From the NCBI GenBank assembly GCA_977016875.1, contig CDRNST010000054.1:310001-374000 (forward strand): a stretch of DNA of 64,000 nucleotides. The letters are read 5' to 3'. The stretch is from Pavona decussata. Lineage: Eukaryota. Positions 1 through 58,170 of the stretch are shown here, piece after piece. The notes under the pieces were generated by a model. That model saw nothing but the letters and a program-made list of their open reading frames with translations, ran no database searches and had not been told where the DNA came from. Each line of letters opens with the position of its first letter. Position 1 is the stretch's first letter. The position numbers were made by a program, and so were the translations under genes.

Positions 1-2181
1 ACACGGCTATACACGCCTATACACAGCTATTCATGGCTATACACGGCTATACATGCCTATACACGGTTATACATGGTAATACATGGCAGTACATGGCAAT
101 ACATGACTATACACGGCTATACATGGCAATACAAGGCTATACATGTCTATACACGGCCATACATGGCATTACATGGCAATAAATGGCCATACATGGCTAC
201 ACATGGCAATACATGGCTATACACGGCTATACATGGCTATACACGGCTATACACGGCTATACATGGCAACACATGGCAATACATGGCTATACACGGCTAT
301 ACATGCCCATACACGGTTATACATGGCAATACATGGCCATACATGGCTATACATAGCTATACATGGCGATACGTGGCTATACATGGCCATACACGGATAT
401 ACATGACTATACGTGGCTACACATGGCCATACACGGCTATATATGGCAATACACGACTATACATGGCTATACACGGCAATACACGGCTGTACATGACTAC
501 AAACGGCTATACATTGCTATACACGGCTATACATGGCTATACATGGTAATACATAGCAGTACATGGCAATACATGACTTTTCACGGCTATACACGGCTAT
601 ACACGGTTATACAAAGCTATACATGGCTATACACGGCTATACATGGCTATACACTGATGGCAATACACGGCTGTACATGGCTACAAACGGCTATACATGG
701 CTATACATTGCTATACATGGTAATACATGGCAATACATGGCAGTATATAGCAATACATGACTACACATGGCTATACACGGCTATACATGGCTATACATGG
801 TAACACATGGCAGTACATGGCAATACATGACTATACACGGCTATATATACACGGTTATACATGGCTATACACAGCTATACATGGCTATACATGCCTATAC
901 ACAGCTATACATGGCTATACACGGCTATATATGGCAATACACGGTTATACATGGTAATACATGGCAATACATGACTATACATGGCTATACACGGCTATAC
1001 ATGGCTATACACGGCTATACACGGTTATACATGGCAATACATGGCTATACACGGCTATACACGGTTATACATGGCTATACATGCCTAAACATGGCAATAC
1101 ACGGTTATACACGGCTATACGTGGCTAAACACGGCTAAACACGGCTATACATGGCTATACATGGCAACACATGGCAATAAATGGCTATACATGCCTATAG
1201 ACGGTTATACATGGCTACACACGGCTATACATGGCAATACACGGTTATACATGGTAATACATGGCAATACATGACTATATATGGCTATACACGGCTATAC
1301 ACGGCTATACATGGCAATACATGGCTATACACGGCTATACATGGCAATACACGGTTATACACGGCTATACACTCCTATACATAGCTATACACGGCTATAC
1401 ATGCCTATACACGGTTATACACGGTTATACATGGCTATACACAGCTATACATGGCTATACATGGCAATACACTGTTATACACGGCTATACACGCCTATAC
1501 ACAGCTATACACGGCTATACATGCCTAAATACGGTTATACATGCTAATACATGGCAATACATGGCAGTACATGGGAATACATGACTATACACGGCTATAC
1601 ACGGCTCTACATGGCAATACAAGGCTATACATGGCTATACACTGCTATACATGGCATTACATGGCAATACATGGCTATACATGGCTACACAAGGCAATAC
1701 ATGGCTACACACGGCTAATACATGGCGATACACGGCTATACATGGCTATACAAGGCTATACACGGCTATACACGGCTATACATGGCAACACATGGCAATA
1801 CATGGCTATACACGGCTATACATGGCGATACACGGCTATACATGGCTATACACGGCTATACATGCCTATACACGGTTATACATGACAATACACGGCTATA
1901 CATGGCCATACACGGCTATACATGGCATTACATGGCCATACATGGCTATACATGGCAATACATGGCTATACATGGCCATACATGGCTATACATGGCTATA
2001 CACGGCTCAACACATGGCAATACATGGCTATGCACGGCTATACATGCCTACACACGGTTATACATGGCAATACACGGCTATACATCGCTATACACGGCTA
2101 TACATGGCATTACATGGCCATACATGGCTATACATGGCTATACAAGGCAATACATGGCTTTACATGGCTATACACGGCTAA
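1..2181. repeat. 10-bp minisatellite (ACAYGGCTAT)n, runs off the left edge of the window
   Basis: About 218 degenerate tandem copies of ACACGGCTAT/ACATGGCTAT/ACATGGCAAT. It explains all the HGYTRLYMAI-type ORFs. Confidence 0.98.
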
Positions 2182-2439
2182 TGGCTGTATATGGCATTTA
2201 ATTAACTATTATAATACACTTTACCATTTTTATTATAATTATGATACACTTTAATAACCCTACTTAAAGTACCTACCCATTTGATTAGTTACCAGCTCTC
2301 CTCTGGGAAATGGGAAATTGAGCCAGCGATCGGTAAGTACATGCAGTTTTGCGAACGAGAAGGAAAGTTCAAGGAAAGTCAATTTAGCTTACGCGAAAAA
2401 TTCAAAGATTTTCTGCTAAAAACAAACTTGTTTTCAGAA

Positions 2440-5400
2440 ATGCTTATCAAAGTGAAGGTAAATATGCTTTGATGCAGGCTTGAACATTTGTTTTTTTTGT
2501 TTTAACGCCCGTTTTCTCTTTTGTTTCGTCGCCCTTTGTGATCAGACCTTGACAGGAAAAGAGGTTGGTATTTTTTCTTTATATAGATTTTACATTTTCA
2601 GAATGTACGCTGTTATGAGATCAGTGGTATTTGCACCCTATTGAAACTCAAACATATATTGAAAATTTAAGTGGCCCAAATTTCCTTGTTATGAAGTTAC
2701 CCAAATGTAATTTATTTGGATAACTAAAAAATGTAGCCAGCCATTTTTCAAATCAGAATGAGAGCAGACCAGTTTTGTAAATAATTTTATTATTATGTTT
2801 AATCCTTCAAAGTACCATGAAAGGTATAGTCAAAGCTTTTGAAATGAAATGTGATCACAACTGTTAAAAATTTTCAGGGCCCGGCTCCAGGCTAACGGTA
2901 GGCAACAAGCCTCAGACTAGTAAAAATTCAGTGTTGGCTACTGAATAAATTTTGCCTTTAATTTCACAAGCCATTTTGGCTAGTTAAAATTGTAAGGCAC
3001 TACAAGTTCAAAGAAAAATGAAAATTATTTACAATTTACTGTTACCAGATAGCCCTCATCACGGTTTTCAACGCCATTTTGACGAGTAGGCAAACAGGCT
3101 TGAAATAACAGTGTTTGTATGGAAATCAGATGCCAAATTACTTTCATACAACATCGCTTCTGAACAATTCATGAATTGGAAACTTTTAGCACTAGGAAAA
3201 GATTGAGACTGGGGCTGACTGTCATGGCGGCCAGGGCACGAAAGAGCTAGCTCCGTAAAACTTGGGCGTCCTTATCTGTTTAACCTTATTGAATTGGTAT
3301 GCGGTGAGCTTGAGTAGATTAGTAACGGCAGTTTACAATTTATTGGACTAGAAGTATGTCAAAAACGTCAAAAGCCAAAGAGAAAAAGCGTTTGCGAAGC
3401 TCAAATTCGTCAACTGGAGAAGTAGTGGACGACTCGCAAATAATTGAGAAACTTATAAGTATTCAGGATAGAATTGAGAACGGCTTCACCAAGATTAATG
3501 AAGAAATTGCAGCCCTAAAACTTGAACTTAAAAACGACATCAAAACTGTCAGAGAGGATCTAAACGAGGCTACAAAGTCCTTAAACGCAGTTTGGGAGGA
3601 GGTCACTTTGCTACAAGAAAAGAATAAAACCCTACAACAGCAACTCGACAGTACCACAGAAGAGAATGCGAAGTTAAAGGAGGATTTGGAAGCCGTAAGA
3701 GTTCGAATGGTGAAGCAAGAAGACTACTCCAGAAGAGAAAATTTGCGCTTCTACAATATCCCAGAAAGCGCTCAGGAGACGAACGAGGAATGCATTCAAA
3801 AGGTGAAGCAAGTCTTATCCGATCTAGGTGCGCCTTCGGACATCAAATTTCATGCCATCCACCGTACAGGAAAGCCCAATACTAACTCCGGAGCTTCCTC
3901 GACATCAGAAGGAGAGCCTCGCCCGAGACCGATATTGGCACGTTTTGTCTCTCGCATGGATTCCGAGTCAATTTGGTTCAAGAGGAAAGAGCTTCGCAAA
4001 AGTTCGCGCTTCGCCACCGTGTCAATTGATAAAGATCTCTCACCTGAATCGGCAAGAGAACGAGCCAAACTTCGAGTTGCCTACAGGAAAGCAAAGGAGT
4101 TGAACATTGAAAAAGTGTTTATTAAAGGTAAAAATCTGATTATTAACAGTAGTAAATACTCGGTGAACACTTTGCCGGAATATCTTGTAGCACATCAAGA
4201 TGGTAGTAACAACTGATCAGCCACTTTCTTTTTTTGTTATGGTAAAAAAATCGTCGTGGCAACTAGCTATATTTTGTCTTTGTAAAGCTAAATATCGATT
4301 AAGCTTTCTCAAGCACCACTAAATTTACTTAAAGTTTTTTTTTTTTTTTTTTTCTACCTTTCTAATCAGTTTTAAGAATGTTCTACCGATGCAATATTTT
4401 GTGTACCTTTATTTACTTTATCAGTACGGCGCTTGTGCTCGGTGAAAATCAGAGTTGTGATAAAATTTGCATACCATTTAAACACGTATTTAGCATATTC
4501 AAACAGTTAAGTTCGCCACGGTTTCTTTTCGTACCTGGTATTGTTATAAGTCCAAAGTCTCAAGGGTCTTATTTAGGTTTAAATCTCAAGACCCTTTTAG
4601 AACCTCATTATTATTCTTTTGTGTGGGTGTGAGTGTGTATTGGTTTTGTATGTATGTGTCCTATTGTTTCCGTGTTTGGTGTAAAGGCGGTTATCATGAA
4701 GCTACCGTTTTGAAAATAATTTGTTTTTATGACACATTGATTATATATTTGCAAGCAGCAAGGAGAATGTAAATTTTAAACTTCTTTCACTTAACGTTCG
4801 TGGAATTCGATCGCCGGAAAAAAGGAGAGCTTTGTTTGTCTGGTTAAAAAAACAAAAAGCGGATATAATTTTCCTTCAAGAAACATATAGCTCGAAAGAC
4901 ATTGAGAATATATGGAGAACTCAGTGGAGTGGGAAAATGTTTTTCGCGCACGGAACAAACCACAGCTGTGGTGTGATGACACTCATAAGGAAAGATTTAG
5001 ATTTTGAAGATGAATCGTGCCTATGTGATCCAGCTGGGAGATTTATTATTTTAAATGCGACTGTGCAAGGAGTTAAATATATTTTTGCCAATATTTATGC
5101 ACCAAATAAAGTGCGTGATCAGTGCACATATTTTAAAGATTTACAGGAGAGGTTGGATGGTATAATCTCAAGCCCTGAGCAAAAAGTTGTCATTGGAGGC
5201 GATTTCAATGTCACTTTTGATTCTAATTTGGATTGTCTGGGTGGGTCGCCAGCCCAAAAAGAGTCGGTTAAGGTACTTGAAGAAATTTGTTTTGATATGG
5301 ACCTCGTTGATATCTGGAGAATAAGAAATCCGGATGGAAGACTATTTACTTGGAAGCAAACAAGACCTTTGATCCAAAGAAGACTTGATTTTTGGCTGAT

Positions 5401-16789: not shown

Positions 16790-18700
16790 TAATTTGCCTC
16801 CATCAAAATTGATGATTCTTGCAAATCGCTCGGCGGTAATGAAAAATAATGATAGTTAAATGTATAACTAGACAAAAGTATAAATTTAAGGTGGATTAAA
16901 AACGCCGGGAGGGAAGGGTCATTTACCGCCTCGTTAAATAAGAAGTTCCATTCTCTTACTGTTCTGGGAAAATATGAAACTTTATAGTAGTCAGTATGGG
17001 CGAATGGGACCTCGTAAGCTATATCATTAACATGTCGTCCCACTCGATCCAGAGGTTTCAAATACTTCACAGTCTCAATCCCAGTTTGCCAATGGTGAAT
17101 TTTGTAGAAGATGGACAGTCTATTTCTTTCTCTTCTTTCTTCGAGTGTATCACACTGCAGTGGAATACCCTGAAGCATTTCACTAACACTGGATGCGTTG
17201 TTATATTGGTTTAAGACATATCGAGCGGCGCGTCTCTGTACCATTTCTAGCTTCTTTACATTTCCTTTCGTATAAGGATCCCATGCCCCTGAAGAGTATT
17301 CTAGTAATGGGCGAACCAAGCTCTTATAAGCCACGGATTTGAGGCTAAGTGAATTAATTCTCAAGTTCCTTCTCAAACAAAAGATTTCCGATCCTTATGT
17401 GTAATTTTTTGCAATATGTCGATCCCACCTAAGGTCTGAGGTGAGGGTAACTCCTAGGTACTTTACCGAGTTTATGGTTTCGACAACTTTGTCATGTAGG
17501 GTGTAGTTATGAATTACTGGATTCTGCTTACGAGTGCCCCGTAGGACATAGCATTTGTCAACGTTTAACTCCATGAGCCATTGCTCCTCCCACGGTTCTA
17601 ATTTTCTCAGATCATTCTGGAGAGTCTCAGTGTCACCCGGTGATCGTATAGTTAGGTATAATAGGGAGTCATCCGCGAAAAGGCGGACAGTTGAAATTAA
17701 TGTCTCTGGTAAGTCATTGATGTATAGTAAAAAATGTCATGGGCCCAAGACTGAGCCTTGATGGACTCTTGAGTTAACATATGACAACTCGTTAGGTTCG
17801 ATTTGAAAGAAAAGCTTGTATCCAGCGATTTGTTTTCCCCCGAACACCATAGTGGTCTAACTTTAAGAGAAGCCTTTGGTAACCAGCTTTGTAAAATGCT
17901 TTGGTGAAAGTCCGTTTGACCTCCACTTTGCATCTGATCATTTGCTAAGTCATTGACTAACTCCACTAGTTGTGTTTCACAGGATTGGCCCTCTCTGAAG
18001 CCGTGTTGTAAAAGATATAAGATGTTGTGATCGTTTACGTGCATCATAATATTACTGGTCAGAACATGTTCCATTGGCTTACATGCTATACAGGTTAGGG
18101 ATATTGGTCTGTAATTTGCTGTATCAGACCTCTTTCCTTTCTTAAAGACGGGGGTAATATTTGCAGTTTTCCAGTCTTCAGGCACTTCTCCGTCGTCATA
18201 TGACTTCTTAAATATGCAGACAGCCGTCAACATTAAGGGAACTGAAACAAATGTGATGGTATATTTCCAGCCTGGTGAATGAATGAGAATGATGATTATT
18301 CTAGAAAGTGACGCAGGCATACTCGGAAAAAAGAAATCCGAGTGCTCCTATCAGGAGTCGAACCTAAGACCTTCCGATTACTATGCTCTACCACTGAGCT
18401 ACAGGAGACTCGTGGGAGCTAAGGCCATTAAACTAGGTTCATGGGACAAACATCCTGCATACTGCTAGGATTTGAATGTCGAACGTGTGGTAAATGAAAC
18501 AAATGTGATGGTATATTTCCAGCCTGGTGAATGAATGAGAATGATGATTATTCTAGAAAGTGACGGAACTATAGGTTTGCCATTTCTTTTAATACTCTGG
18601 GCCTGACGCCTTATGGTCCTTATGGGTTTTTAGGCGTTGTAACAGTTTTAATACGTCAGACCCTGTTATTTCAATGTCAGCCATATCTGCGTATGGTGAA
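16790..18700 (-). mobile_element. Decayed CR1/jockey-group LINE RT fragment, interrupted by the 18244-18564 element
   Basis: RVLKEMAN..., VPEDWKTANITPVFKKG, NYRPISLT, QHGFREGQSCETQL, LFADD (~17670), KYLGVT, YKSLVRPLLEY, VQRRAAR; several frameshifts. Confidence 0.88.
18244..18564 (-). mobile_element. Terminally redundant tRNA-containing SINE-like element (252-bp unit, ~1.28 copies)
   Basis: Perfect 71-bp direct repeats at 18243-18313 and 18495-18565. Internal A box TAGCTCAGTGG (18391-18401) and B box GGTTCGACTCC (18354-18364) on the minus strand. TSD GGAACT at 18238-18243 and 18565-18570. Confidence 0.85.
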
Positions 18701-18964: not shown

Positions 18965-19136
18965 GTTTTTTTGGGAGAATGCAAAAACGGATTTGTGATC
19001 TCAGATCATTCGGATCATGGTGCATCAAAGGAACCGACGAATCCACTCTGGGAGTGAAGTCGTCGGTTCCTTCGTTGCACCATGATCCGAATGATTTAAG
19101 ATCACAAATCCGTTTTTGGATTCTCCCAAAAAAAAC
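18965..19136. mobile_element. Palindromic MITE
   Basis: GTTTTTTTGGGAGAATGCAAAAACGGATTTGTGATCT...AGATCACAAATCCGTTTTTGGATTCTCCCAAAAAAAAC, a near-perfect fold-back. Confidence 0.8.
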
Positions 19137-29037: not shown

Positions 29038-31936
29038 GAATATTTGTTATGGCAAATGAAGTGTTCATAGACTAATTTTTGTACATATCTCTTTTTTCTT
29101 CACATAATTTGTGAATCAAGTGCCCAAGAGCACCTTTTTTAATAGTTGGAGTATTTATTCAAGGAATACATTCTATTTTCACTTTACCAAACTTTTATTT
29201 ATGATTTGCATTTTGCTTAGTGGATTCTTACATGTAATAGCATAAAATAACTTTCTTAACAGTGGGAGGTCTTATCATGCTACAAAAACGTTAATGACAT
29301 TAATGTAGTTTTACAACAATACAAATATAAAAGAAGCAAGCCTGCTTGGATGTCATTCAGACAACTGATTACTTTAAAATTACATTGGTTAAAATTGATG
29401 TAAATCAAAAAAGATTCACCAGAAAGCAGCTTTTACTTTCTTTCTATTTCTTTATTTTTTGTCGTTCAAGAACTCTAAAGAAAGTACCGGTATTTATATA
29501 AAAAAGACAATCCTGGAAAGTAACATTTAAGAAAACGTGAAAAAGCCATATATTCACAGATGTCTTTCTACCTACTACTAACAATATTATAAATGGAGAG
29601 TTTAATTTAATATGGTGTCCTGCTGGATTGGTGTAAATAGTTTAATCATTTGAAGAGCATGGTGTGCAGAATTTTGGAAAATTTGATTGGCCCAACCGTG
29701 TTGGCAAGAATCATTAATTTTCTGGTTTGAATGAATATTATGAATGAAGCTCAATCATATTAATTTCAACTGTCTGTAAATACATAATATTATTGTAATA
29801 ATGAACTGAAGAGAGCATTATTATTATTATTATTATTTATCTTTTCCTCTGCTGGGTCATTATGAAGAAGAGCATTGCGCGTACTTGGAAAATTAGATTA
29901 GTCCAGTTATGCCAGCCTAAAGTGCTAATTTTCTTGTTTGAATGAAGCCAGTGTATGAGTAAAGTTCAATCATATTAATTTTACCTGCCTGTAAATTCAT
30001 AAGATTATAAATTGTAATAAATGAATGGAAGTGAGGATTACTATTCACAGTGTATTGTTTCTTCTCTTGGGTCAAACGTGAATGCCAGTAAACTAACAGT
30101 ACTGCCTGTGTCACTGACTGGAAAAAATACATAATTTGACCATTTATTCACCAGGTTTAAAACATAACATTACATTTCTTTCAGCTTTCTGTATTTGTTT
30201 GGTCCATTTGTTTGCAATTACAGTGACTTGTGTCAGACAAAAATGGCATGCATGTAGATGCATGATTTCTGATGTCAAACACCTTTAGTTATCAAAAGTG
30301 ACACAGAAATCTCACCCAGATTGTATACTTCAGTGGTATAACAGTTTTTGTTGTTGTAGAAATTCATAGAATGTAAAGCTCCTTGTGACCTTTGTGTAAT
30401 TGATTAAACTGAGAGCCTGACATTTTTCAGTGTGACCGCCAGCCCATTGAATTCAGGAACGAAACAAAACAACAACAATCTGAACACCACACAGAGGAGG
30501 AGTACAGCCATCTTGGATGTTTTGTGTGGGTTATGGCATCTTGAAGATGAAATATAAATGACAAATACTTGACTATTGTCCACCTATGAGCAGCTTTTTG
30601 GACAAAATGAATACTGTCTGGAAGCAAATTATATTTCCAGTGTCCAGAACAATAAGAAAACAATTAGATTATTGGCAGGAGGCAGGCCAGTTGTTTATTT
30701 GACATGCATGAGGTGAAATTTGGTCCAATATGAATAAATGCCAGCCAGTGGTCAGAGTGGAACATGTGCCTCCAGATTTCAACTCCACTGCCCAGACCAC
30801 TAAGCCATACTGCAAATTATCCTGAATGGTAAATGCTATTACCTGACTTTCAATGTAGGGAAAGCTCAGTTGATTGAAAAATGTAAACAGAACTCTATAT
30901 TGAATACCTAATTATTACTTCAGAACATAAGGATCCCTACCCCCTTGACCCAACCCCTCCGAATGACAAAGTAAATGACCCATCAAAAAGTGGTATGGTA
31001 CTAACATTTGTTGTTAAGAAATACCCATTCTGTTATCAACTGGACAAAGAATGGGTATTCTATAGAAAATAATAATTATTGATACCATACCACTTTTTAA
31101 TGGGGCTGCCTTGATCAAACCTAGAGTCAACAGTGTAACATCTCTTAAGAACCTTTGCTCAATGTATTTATTACCTTACTGTTTCTATATGATTTATATT
31201 GAAACAAATGATAAAGCTCAGGTCTACCTTGACACCAACACAAATAATATTGATGTTTCAAAACTGTTTCCCTGCAGTAGTTCATGTGTTACAATGGCCA
31301 TCTGTGTTAAATTAGATTTGATTATGAGTATGACTTTAAAATTCCAAACTAGTCAGTTCCTCACTTCCTCTAGCCAGCAATTACAAGGACACTCTAGAAG
31401 CAAATGATTTTCTCAAACTCATACTCGATCTGCTACTCATGCACTGTACCGAAATCTTAAAGGGGCACTGTCACCTATTTTAGTGTCACTTTGAATGACC
31501 AAAAAACATAATTGGTGGAATCATTAAAATAACGGTTCAGAGTTGTTAACAATGACCATGCTAGTGCACAGAAACTGGTAATAATTATCTTTGGCTACAG
31601 ATCGCTAGGATGGAAATGGATTGCAACTTGAAAATTAAATTGGCCAATTTTTTGAAGTTTTTCTTGTGTATTTTAGAGAAGTTGCTAGAACTGATTACAG
31701 TTCTTCCTTGGAGAAATCCCTTAAAATATATTCTTCTAAGTGTTCTAAGAGCAATTTTAAGAAAGCAAAAAAAAATTTCATTAAGTGTTTGGCGAATGAG
31801 CAGTTTTGACCAAAATACAGCAAAATCGCCATGATAATGCCCCTGTAAGGTCCCTTGGACATTAAGTATCACTATTATCGCCAGTTTTACTTTACATGAT
31901 TGTAAACAAGCCTAGGTAGCTTGTCGTGTGTGTGAT

Positions 31937-57124: not shown

Positions 57125-58170
57125 CATCATCAATTCCTTTCAGCATGGCCTTACGACTAACTTAGAAGAATTTGTTCCACGGACGAGTTCTTCAACAAAC
57201 GTTCCGACGCACTCGCGACACATTTAATCAAGAGAGGATATACACACCGTTTATTAAAGAAGAAATAGAGAAAGTTCGTCAAATTTCCCACAGCCAAGCC
57301 CTCGAAACATTTTTGAAAAATGAGTCTAACAGGATTCCATTTGTAGTAACATTTAATCCAGCCCTTCCTAACATACGTCGAATCATTTTCAGCAATTCAA
57401 ACATTCTTCGTTCTTCACAGTGATGCAAAGGAGCATTCCCTTCTCCTCCTCTCATATCGTTTCGCCGACGCAACAACCTACGTGAAATACTAGTCAAGGC
57501 CAAACACCGCAGACCACCCCCAAGACACCGGGAGCTGTCCGTTGTAACAGAAATAGGTGCAAAACGTGTCCCTTTGTTACGGAGGGAACCACATTTTACA
57601 CCTTTTTCTCTACAAACGGACACAGATCCATACGACATCACATCACGTGCTCATCTTCAAATCTCATATACATGATACAGTGCTCCAAATGCAAGGTACA
57701 ATACATAGGAGAGACTAAACGACATCTAAGCGACAGATTTGGCGAACACAGACGCGCAATCGAAAAAGCCATTAAACAATGTCACATTGATCAACCTACC
57801 GTTTCAGATCACTTCACTCTTCCTGGCCATTCAATCAACAACATAGAACTCATCCTCCTAGAACTCATTAACTCCAACAGAGACACCATTCGGAAAGCTA
57901 GGGAAGCATTTCTAATTTCCAAGGGCAAGACTCATGAACCCTATGGAATGAACAGACGCGATGAAACTTTATCTGTCTACTGTACATGTTTCAGCTTTCT
58001 TTGTTTATCAACCAATCACATCTCAACTTTTCATTTGTATTGTCTTTAAATATTGTAACCGTTTATTTCCAATTTTTACTTACCTTTTCTCAGCCCCTGT
58101 AGAAGGTTAGCATTGTCTAACCGAAATATTGGGCAATAAAATTATTTTAGTTGTCCGATCACCCTGTATT
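57125..58170 (+). mobile_element. Penelope-like element 3' fragment (RT thumb + GIY-YIG) inserted in the BEL element
   Basis: SIPFSMALRL..RRICST, RIPFVVTFNPALP, NLIYMIQCSKCKVQYIGETKRHLSDRFGEH, HF, RKAREAFLI, PYGMN. Confidence 0.88.
58093..58134 (+). ncRNA. Hammerhead ribozyme motif with a core substitution
   Basis: GCCC-CTGTAGA-A-GGTTAG(cattgt)CTAACC-GAAA-TATT-GGGC: stem I GCCC/GGGC, 6-bp stem II, core CUGUAGA instead of CUGANGA. Confidence 0.65.

Follow-up and report, generated by a model that had tools for sequence, protein, structure and literature searches.

A tRNA-bearing, ribozyme-free repeat family in a stony coral, most likely mobilized by a Penelope-like element

Introduction

Metazoan retrozymes of the type without long terminal repeats (LTRs) are tandem repeats whose units contain a hammerhead (Cervera & de la Pena 2020, PMC7229834), and they have been proposed to be non-autonomous derivatives of Penelope-like elements (PLEs; bioRxiv 10.64898/2026.07.22.740005). 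PLEs themselves are known for strong 5' truncation, for partial tandems that form pseudo-LTRs (pLTRs), for an inverted 5'-truncated copy and for a tail of 30-40 bp that is often found at one end only; the PLEs of the Naiad and Chlamys groups lack canonical hammerheads, and non-autonomous Chlamys elements insert as multicopy head-to-tail arrays (PMC8557442). The purified PLE protein of an anole cuts and extends both DNA strands (Frangieh et al. 2024, PMC11167929); its reverse transcriptase (RT) begins inside the RNA at two adjacent sites, the genomic tail being the stretch between them, and hammerhead cleavage is unnecessary (PMC11167929). Here we analyse an insert in a 64,000-nucleotide stretch of the genome of the stony coral Pavona decussata (GenBank assembly GCA_977016875.1, contig CDRNST010000054.1, positions 310,001 to 374,000 of the forward strand), hereafter called the window, whose own coordinates are used wherever no other locus is named. 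The insert belongs to a young, non-coding family of more than 1000 copies whose unit carries a tRNA-like gene and no detectable ribozyme, and which is most likely mobilized in trans by the RT/GIY-YIG protein of a PLE.

Structure of the insert

The insert occupies positions 18244-18564 on the minus strand, which is its RNA sense, and measures 321 bp or 1.28 family units, one unit of 252 nt (shortened by a private 7-nt deletion) being followed by positions 1-69/70 of the next. As an earlier note on this DNA had described, a perfect direct repeat of 71 nt is found at both ends (18243-18313 and 18495-18565, spacing 252), and the hexamer GGAACT, read on both sides at 18238-18243 and 18565-18570, forms the target-site duplication (TSD). 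A single base of microhomology (A) at the 3' boundary of the insert places this boundary at unit position 69 or 70. The 5' terminal repeat, corresponding to positions 1-70 of the complete unit, thus named from the RNA sense, covers 18495-18564, and the 3' terminal repeat covers 18244-18312, both on the minus strand. Along this strand, unit positions 1-70 are followed by an AC-rich stretch, a stem-loop, the tRNA-like module, a hairpin, an 8-nt linker and again unit positions 1-69/70.

The window copy begins 8 nt 3' of the hairpin, at what is counted as unit position 1 and within the zone in which 5' ends of the family are enriched. Its 3' terminal repeat stops at the 'long', tail-bearing 3' site of the family (..CATTTNTTTCA), and the alternative 'short' site (unit 29/30, ..CATCATTCTCA) is contained in the same repeat near 18283-18284. 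The copy itself has no inverted arm. Reading of the insert revealed no poly(A), TG..CA ends, primer-binding site (PBS) or polypurine tract (PPT), again as previously noted. Both 71-nt repeats carry a C-to-G variant that is found elsewhere at two loci only.

The family and its unit

A search of the 602-Mb genome gave 122 scored matches from 1254 candidates, and a 32-mer spanning the 3' end of the tRNA module and the hairpin has 971 exact occurrences. The copies diverge from each other by ~1-2%. Their usual unit of 259 nt is made up of a 3' domain with two RT start sites, an AC-rich stretch with a stem-loop, a tRNA-like gene with its T-run hairpin, and the 8-nt linker. An older subfamily, 80-88% identical and represented by at least 372 candidates, shares this layout as well as the long 3' end, and many of its members have small inverted partners. 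The 3' end of one such older relative, ~84% identical over the tail and ending at the same ..CATTTCTTTCA site, is located in the window at 30098-30185 on the plus strand.

Two open reading frames (ORFs) were considered and discarded. The older subfamily does not conserve a 35-codon ORF that begins with ATGCCTGC, and a 207-aa ORF (17697-18320, minus strand) is an artefact in which the linker ATG (ATGCCTGC) is by chance in frame with the RT remnant of the neighbouring long interspersed element (LINE). No ribozyme, hammerhead included, was detected with Rfam at E<=10 on either strand of the insert stretch or of a five-unit array, and a pattern search found no CUGANGA hammerhead core inside the arrays, which bears out the lack of such a core in the first reading of the insert.

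Architecture of the genomic copies

The description that follows, given in the tRNA sense, rests on a mapping of the unit to 30 loci, on a reading of flanks and on the parsed coordinate tables of the genome searches. Copies range from less than one to ~17 tandem units, with the largest array at C144:4519322-4523780 and arrays of 8-9 units in C84 and C402, and TSDs of 6-12 bp (e.g. ATATACCACT, AGATCTAACTT and ACTTTCCTC) bound the whole complex at 16 loci. The non-integer copy numbers and TSDs that the earlier note had expected of the family are present among the surveyed copies. Its expectation of variable permutation points was borne out at one end only: the 5' ends are scattered across the whole unit, whereas the 3' ends fall at two sites only, 41 nt apart, namely at unit position ~29/30 (..CATCATTCTCA[T]) or ~70/71 (..CATTTCTTTCA[T]). 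Apparent 3' ends at positions 31-36 or 72-77 proved to be overlaps with the TSD. The two 3' ends lie in a T/C-rich and then AC-rich context; the last letters of the copies are ..TTCTCA(T) or ..CTTTCA(T), and no repeat tail follows them.

The 5' ends show a moderate excess, 18 out of 66 where 10% would be expected, in a 26-nt zone that comprises the linker together with the loop and the 3' arm of the hairpin. A discrete start at unit position 1 was considered and rejected, since it merely reflected where BLAST alignments broke off, the arms themselves continuing into the hairpin; the 26-nt hot zone remains. No pile-up of 5' ends was seen among the mapped copies at the borders of the tRNA module (unit positions 158 and 231).

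Head-to-head pairs of arms are very frequent, joined at variable 5' ends and sometimes with short fillers, and such inverted complexes lie inside one TSD, for example at loci L002, L004, L012 and L016. All 27 inverted pairs with both outer ends visible consist of one arm ending at ~70 and one arm ending at ~30, and neither a 70/70 nor a 30/30 pair was found among them. Single arms ended at ~70 in 13 cases and at ~30 in six, and at these frequencies the chance of obtaining 27 mixed pairs out of 27 is ~1e-10. We refer to this regularity as the one-tail rule.

Comparison with a resident PLE

Taken together, the partial tandems, the inverted 5'-truncated twin, the single 41-nt tail and the variable TSD match the known PLE signature as a whole. 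On this reading, the window copy is a lone arm that extends from the ~70 start and stops 8 nt short of the hairpin in the preceding unit, and its '71-nt LTR' is a pseudo-LTR.

The same genome provides an RT-encoding control. At least 933 GIY-YIG candidates are present, and the dominant resident PLE, designated PLE-A (L031-L060; L061:6168-7495), has an RVT_1 domain followed by a C-terminal GIY-YIG domain. Its 3' ends are either short, at ..CTTCTTTTATCA(T), that is ..TTATCAT beside unique flank, or located ~87 nt further on, and all seven head-to-head pairs scored (7/7) combine one short-end arm with one tail arm. No hammerhead reaching the Rfam gathering score was found in PLE-A at four loci. 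With 7/7 pairs in PLE-A and 27/27 in the tRNA-bearing family, the latter follows the pattern of a PLE that encodes its own RT in the same genome.

On this basis, we propose with good confidence the following course of events. Arrays of the family would be transcribed in the tRNA sense, and a PLE protein would cut the target with a stagger of 6-12 nt, the stagger being evident from the TSDs. Reverse transcription would then start within the RNA at unit position ~30 or ~70, 41 nt apart; the fixed ends are observed, and internal initiation is taken over from the anole PLE. The RT would copy towards the 5' end over less than one to ~17 units and stop variably, with a preference for the hairpin zone, and the other DNA end would often prime a second complementary DNA, giving a head-to-head twin with arms ~70 and ~30. 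The window copy would be the simplest product, a single arm initiated at ~70 and stopped 8 nt before the hairpin of the preceding unit.

Several points weigh against mobilization by a PLE. An autonomous PLE that shares the unit sequence was not found when the 3' domain of the unit was compared with 30 PLE-A loci, the window and all retrieved DNA (blastn at word size 7, and nhmmer), the matches being only family copies and older relatives; PLE-A, which does not resemble the unit in sequence, is accordingly an improbable helper. The RNA data consist of assembled contigs, which give neither strand, RNA ends nor the form of the template. Internal initiation would be carried over by analogy from one vertebrate PLE studied in vitro, and the anole study saw no strand difference in the choice of start site (PMC11167929), while here the two arms always differ.

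Two further loci deserve mention. At 57663-57932 (plus strand), a GIY-YIG match of 34.5 bits marks a PLE copy in the window, which shows no similarity to the tRNA-bearing unit. At L061:7738-7834, a 90%-identical fragment of tRNA module and hairpin precedes, by 8 nt, the 5' LTR of a retrotransposon (7843 onward) whose LTR pairs, ~5.4 kb apart, recur at many loci. As this fragment lies 530 nt downstream of a PLE-A copy, it was considered as a pLTR module of the PLE and rejected: PLE-A stops 240 nt before it and the LTR element starts 8 nt after it, so that its position is coincidental. A copy of a related element seems to have been cut short by the insertion of the LTR retrotransposon.

Representation in RNA

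In contigs assembled from coral metatranscriptome runs, the summed depth over the element is 1e5-1e6 as compared with 0-41 over the flanks, a profile whose middle may be inflated by relatives sharing the tRNA part. This depth is far above the DNA carry-over expected from ~1000-3000 units, with the flanks at zero. The metatranscriptome contigs carry an intact anticodon arm.

The tRNA-like module and its surroundings

The earlier note had placed a tRNA-like part with A and B boxes in the middle of the minus-strand unit, and Rfam confirmed it at 18343-18408 (minus strand) with a score of 38 bits (gathering score 29), the nearest form being a Thr(AGU)-type cloverleaf. In the window copy 7 nt of the anticodon arm are deleted; the deletion is unique in the genome and is a private lesion of this copy rather than a feature of a lineage. 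Because of it ARAGORN called no tRNA in the window copy. In other family copies the module scores ~50 bits, and there ARAGORN does report a tRNA, its anticodon loop being irregular; by reading, the family module has the form of a Thr(AGU)-like cloverleaf in which the A and B boxes are intact and the anticodon loop measures 8 nt. The acceptor stem is retained in the young and old master sequences, with one pair changed from U-A to U-G, which may be taken as weak evidence of constraint on the module.

Directly behind the module, at 18321-18343 (minus strand), lies the hairpin ACTCGG/CCGAGT with a T-run in its loop, as likewise stated before. This run (T6), the only one of the unit, is within 15 nt of the 3' end of the tRNA and looks like the RNA polymerase III (Pol III) terminator of the tRNA cassette. 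Consequently, a Pol III transcript initiated from the A and B boxes would stop before the 3' domain and could not template full units. RT stops are enriched directly 3' of the cassette, which does not define the ends of the template. Its probable role is that of an independent Pol III unit, by which the arrays would be kept open or expressed, or else that of a module for structure or stability. A stem-loop (GACAUUCAAAUCCU..AGGAUGUUUGUC) at 18445-18480 on the minus strand, 3' of the long RT start site in the RNA sense, is a candidate RT-binding region by analogy with the anole PLE (PMC11167929). In the minimum-free-energy fold of a dimer, inter-unit pairing dominates, and this fold is informative for local hairpins only.

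Form of the template

Given the non-integer copy numbers and the TSDs, the data support a copying template longer than one unit, or one unit that is copied repeatedly. The earlier note had suggested reverse transcription from a circular or multimeric RNA. The retroelement nature of the family and a template exceeding one unit stood up to the survey; a circle is not needed, given that the RT of PLEs starts internally on the RNA (PMC11167929). Units within one insertion, both inverted arms included, share the same rare lineage variants (those of L004 occur at 55 places in the genome and those of L016 at 10 places in seven loci), which fits one RNA or ribonucleoprotein per event and homogeneous templates. 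In the array at C208, one variant is present in only two of four units. At C338:886080-886511, lineage variants that are elsewhere separate were found together on opposite arms ~400 nt apart, and at C174:60059-60124 within one unit, which points to recurrent mutation or to template switching between RNAs.

If the RT needs RNA 3' of its start site, as does that of the anole PLE, strictly linear copying would lose one unit per generation, and a step that multiplies the units would be implied, be it rolling circle, template jumping or later unequal crossing-over. The first of these, a circularized unit RNA that the RT circles several times from a fixed start, is compatible with PLE mobilization and may be entertained tentatively, although it is rather unlikely. 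It would account for the shared variants of units and arms, for 5' ends that are broadly spread around the 26-nt hot zone with no sharp full-length end, for arrays of up to ~17 units and for their escape from shortening, and coral hammerhead retrozymes do form circles (PMC7229834). However, the homogeneity is equally explained by homogeneous master arrays, template jumping or unequal crossing-over, the C208 array is unexpected for copies of a single circle, the PLE RT works without circles (PMC11167929), and the searches described above found no self-cleaving motif. Of the release routes named in the earlier note, cleavage by RNase P/Z acting on the tRNA mimic has no support, since insertion ends do not lie at unit positions 158 or 231, where these enzymes would cut; a ribozyme was not found in the Rfam search of the insert and the five-unit array. 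A related scheme, which we judge improbable, is that of a ribozyme-free retrozyme analogue whose tRNA cassette supplies RNA processing or ligation through host tRNA enzymes, giving unit-length and possibly circular RNAs that a PLE RT would copy by rolling circle. If true, small circular RNAs of retroelements would have a second way of arising in animals, one that depends on proteins.

Explanations that dispense with a PLE have to meet the same family-wide pattern. A tRNA-derived short interspersed element (SINE) of the ordinary kind, copied by a LINE with tandems formed by template switching, would be suggested by the A and B boxes, by fixed 3' ends with 5' truncation and TSDs, and by the presence of LINEs in the genome. 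It is nevertheless very unlikely, for the tRNA is internal (unit 158-231) and closely followed by a terminator of its own, poly(A) and microsatellite tails are absent, there are two alternative 3' ends, and insertion 5' ends are not concentrated at the tRNA head (unit 158). The inverted twins moreover each have a true 3' end, unlike those of L1 twin priming, and the strict one-tail rule is that of PLEs, the resident control included. The window copy viewed alone does resemble an LTR-internal-LTR element with a TSD, and tRNA-bearing terminal-repeat retrotransposons in miniature (TRIMs) such as Helenus exist (PMC10886601), so that the 71-nt repeat could be regarded as a mini-LTR. The family survey refuted this reading, to which we attach almost no probability: the repeat varies from 30-70 nt up to many units, the 5' ends vary among copies, TSDs are 6-12 bp and not a fixed 4-5 bp, inverted twins occur, and the TG..CA ends, PBS and PPT of such elements are absent. 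The earlier note had itself named fixed ends with the same 71-bp repeat in all copies, or copies mostly beginning at the 5' end of the tRNA, as findings that would speak against it, and neither was observed. Spread of a satellite at the DNA level, by reintegration of extrachromosomal circular DNA or by carriage on a Helitron or a miniature inverted-repeat transposable element (MITE), would agree with tandem units and many dispersed short arrays, but is highly improbable in view of two discrete 3' termini combined with variable 5' truncation, clean TSDs of variable length around complex tandem and inverted structures, the same pattern in the RT-encoding PLE of this genome and the abundance of the family in RNA libraries.

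Relation to known elements

Mobilization by a PLE being preferred, the family is a ribozyme-free, tRNA-bearing cousin of the animal retrozymes. Like these, it consists of short (~170-400 nt), AT-rich units that have no coding capacity and occur as anything from dimers to long multimers, and it is dispersed, has TSDs of more than 4 bp, is high in RNA, occurs in corals and probably depends on PLEs. Retrozymes, however, have a type I hammerhead in each unit, whereas this family is without an Rfam ribozyme, has a tRNA-like gene with its own terminator and is known here from DNA and assembled RNA contigs. Among its closest known counterparts are the non-autonomous PLE derivatives that likewise lack a ribozyme, the Chlamys elements such as MRC1 of Chlamydomonas (Craig et al. 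2021, PMC8557442); those are found in green algae, lack a tRNA module and have known autonomous partners whose 3' ends they share, while the coral family resides in an animal host. With autonomous PLEs of the Penelope/Poseidon type and the anole element PAc (PMC11167929), the family has in common two internal RT start sites, a tail at one end, extension on both strands, head-to-head twins, 5' truncation and partial tandems; it differs in having no ORF, in a tail of 41 nt as against ~87 nt in PLE-A, and in the lack of detected sequence similarity. A tRNA-derived module with Pol III A and B boxes in a non-autonomous retroelement is also known from SINEs and from Helenus (PMC10886601), but here the module is internal and not a 5' head or part of an LTR, and a LINE-type tail, PBS and PPT are missing. 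Pol III would terminate at the T-run behind the tRNA, short of the 3' domain. Searches of the full-text literature found no description of a tRNA-bearing, PLE-dependent element without a ribozyme.

Non-autonomous partners of animal PLEs have so far been known as hammerhead retrozymes, and the present family makes it likely that the PLE machinery can also be parasitized by an element of SINE-like character with a tRNA gene at its core. The numerous young copies of the family offer a natural record of PLE integration. The one-tail rule, with 27/27 pairs in the family and 7/7 in PLE-A, is stricter than the 'often at one end' of the literature, and suggests that the use of the two start sites is coordinated between both priming events of an integration. 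In genome annotation, copies of the family are easily mistaken for TRIMs, tRNA genes or satellites.

The split LINE and a neighbouring foldback

The insert is flanked by an old, frameshifted LINE RT, whose RVT_1 match of 24 bits is below the Pfam cut-off. The part downstream of the split lies at 17700-18236 and the upstream part (..RVLKEMAN.. / ..KPIVP) at 18571-18660, both on the minus strand, the frames being read from the sequence. According to the earlier note, the two parts rejoin when the insert is removed. This is correct: ..IVP|LMLTAVCIFKKS.. becomes continuous in the frame of the stop-free piece scanned with RVT_1 once the insert and one GGAACT are taken out. RVLKEMAN lies in a different frame, because the LINE is frameshifted.

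Approximately 400 nt from the insert and within the same LINE remnant, a near-perfect foldback is present at 18966-19134, with arms of 83 nt that are 92% complementary, a 3-nt spacer and T-run/A-run flanks. Rfam gave only sub-threshold matches of plant-miRNA-like type, and the foldback could be a MITE or a short head-to-head fragment of a retroelement.

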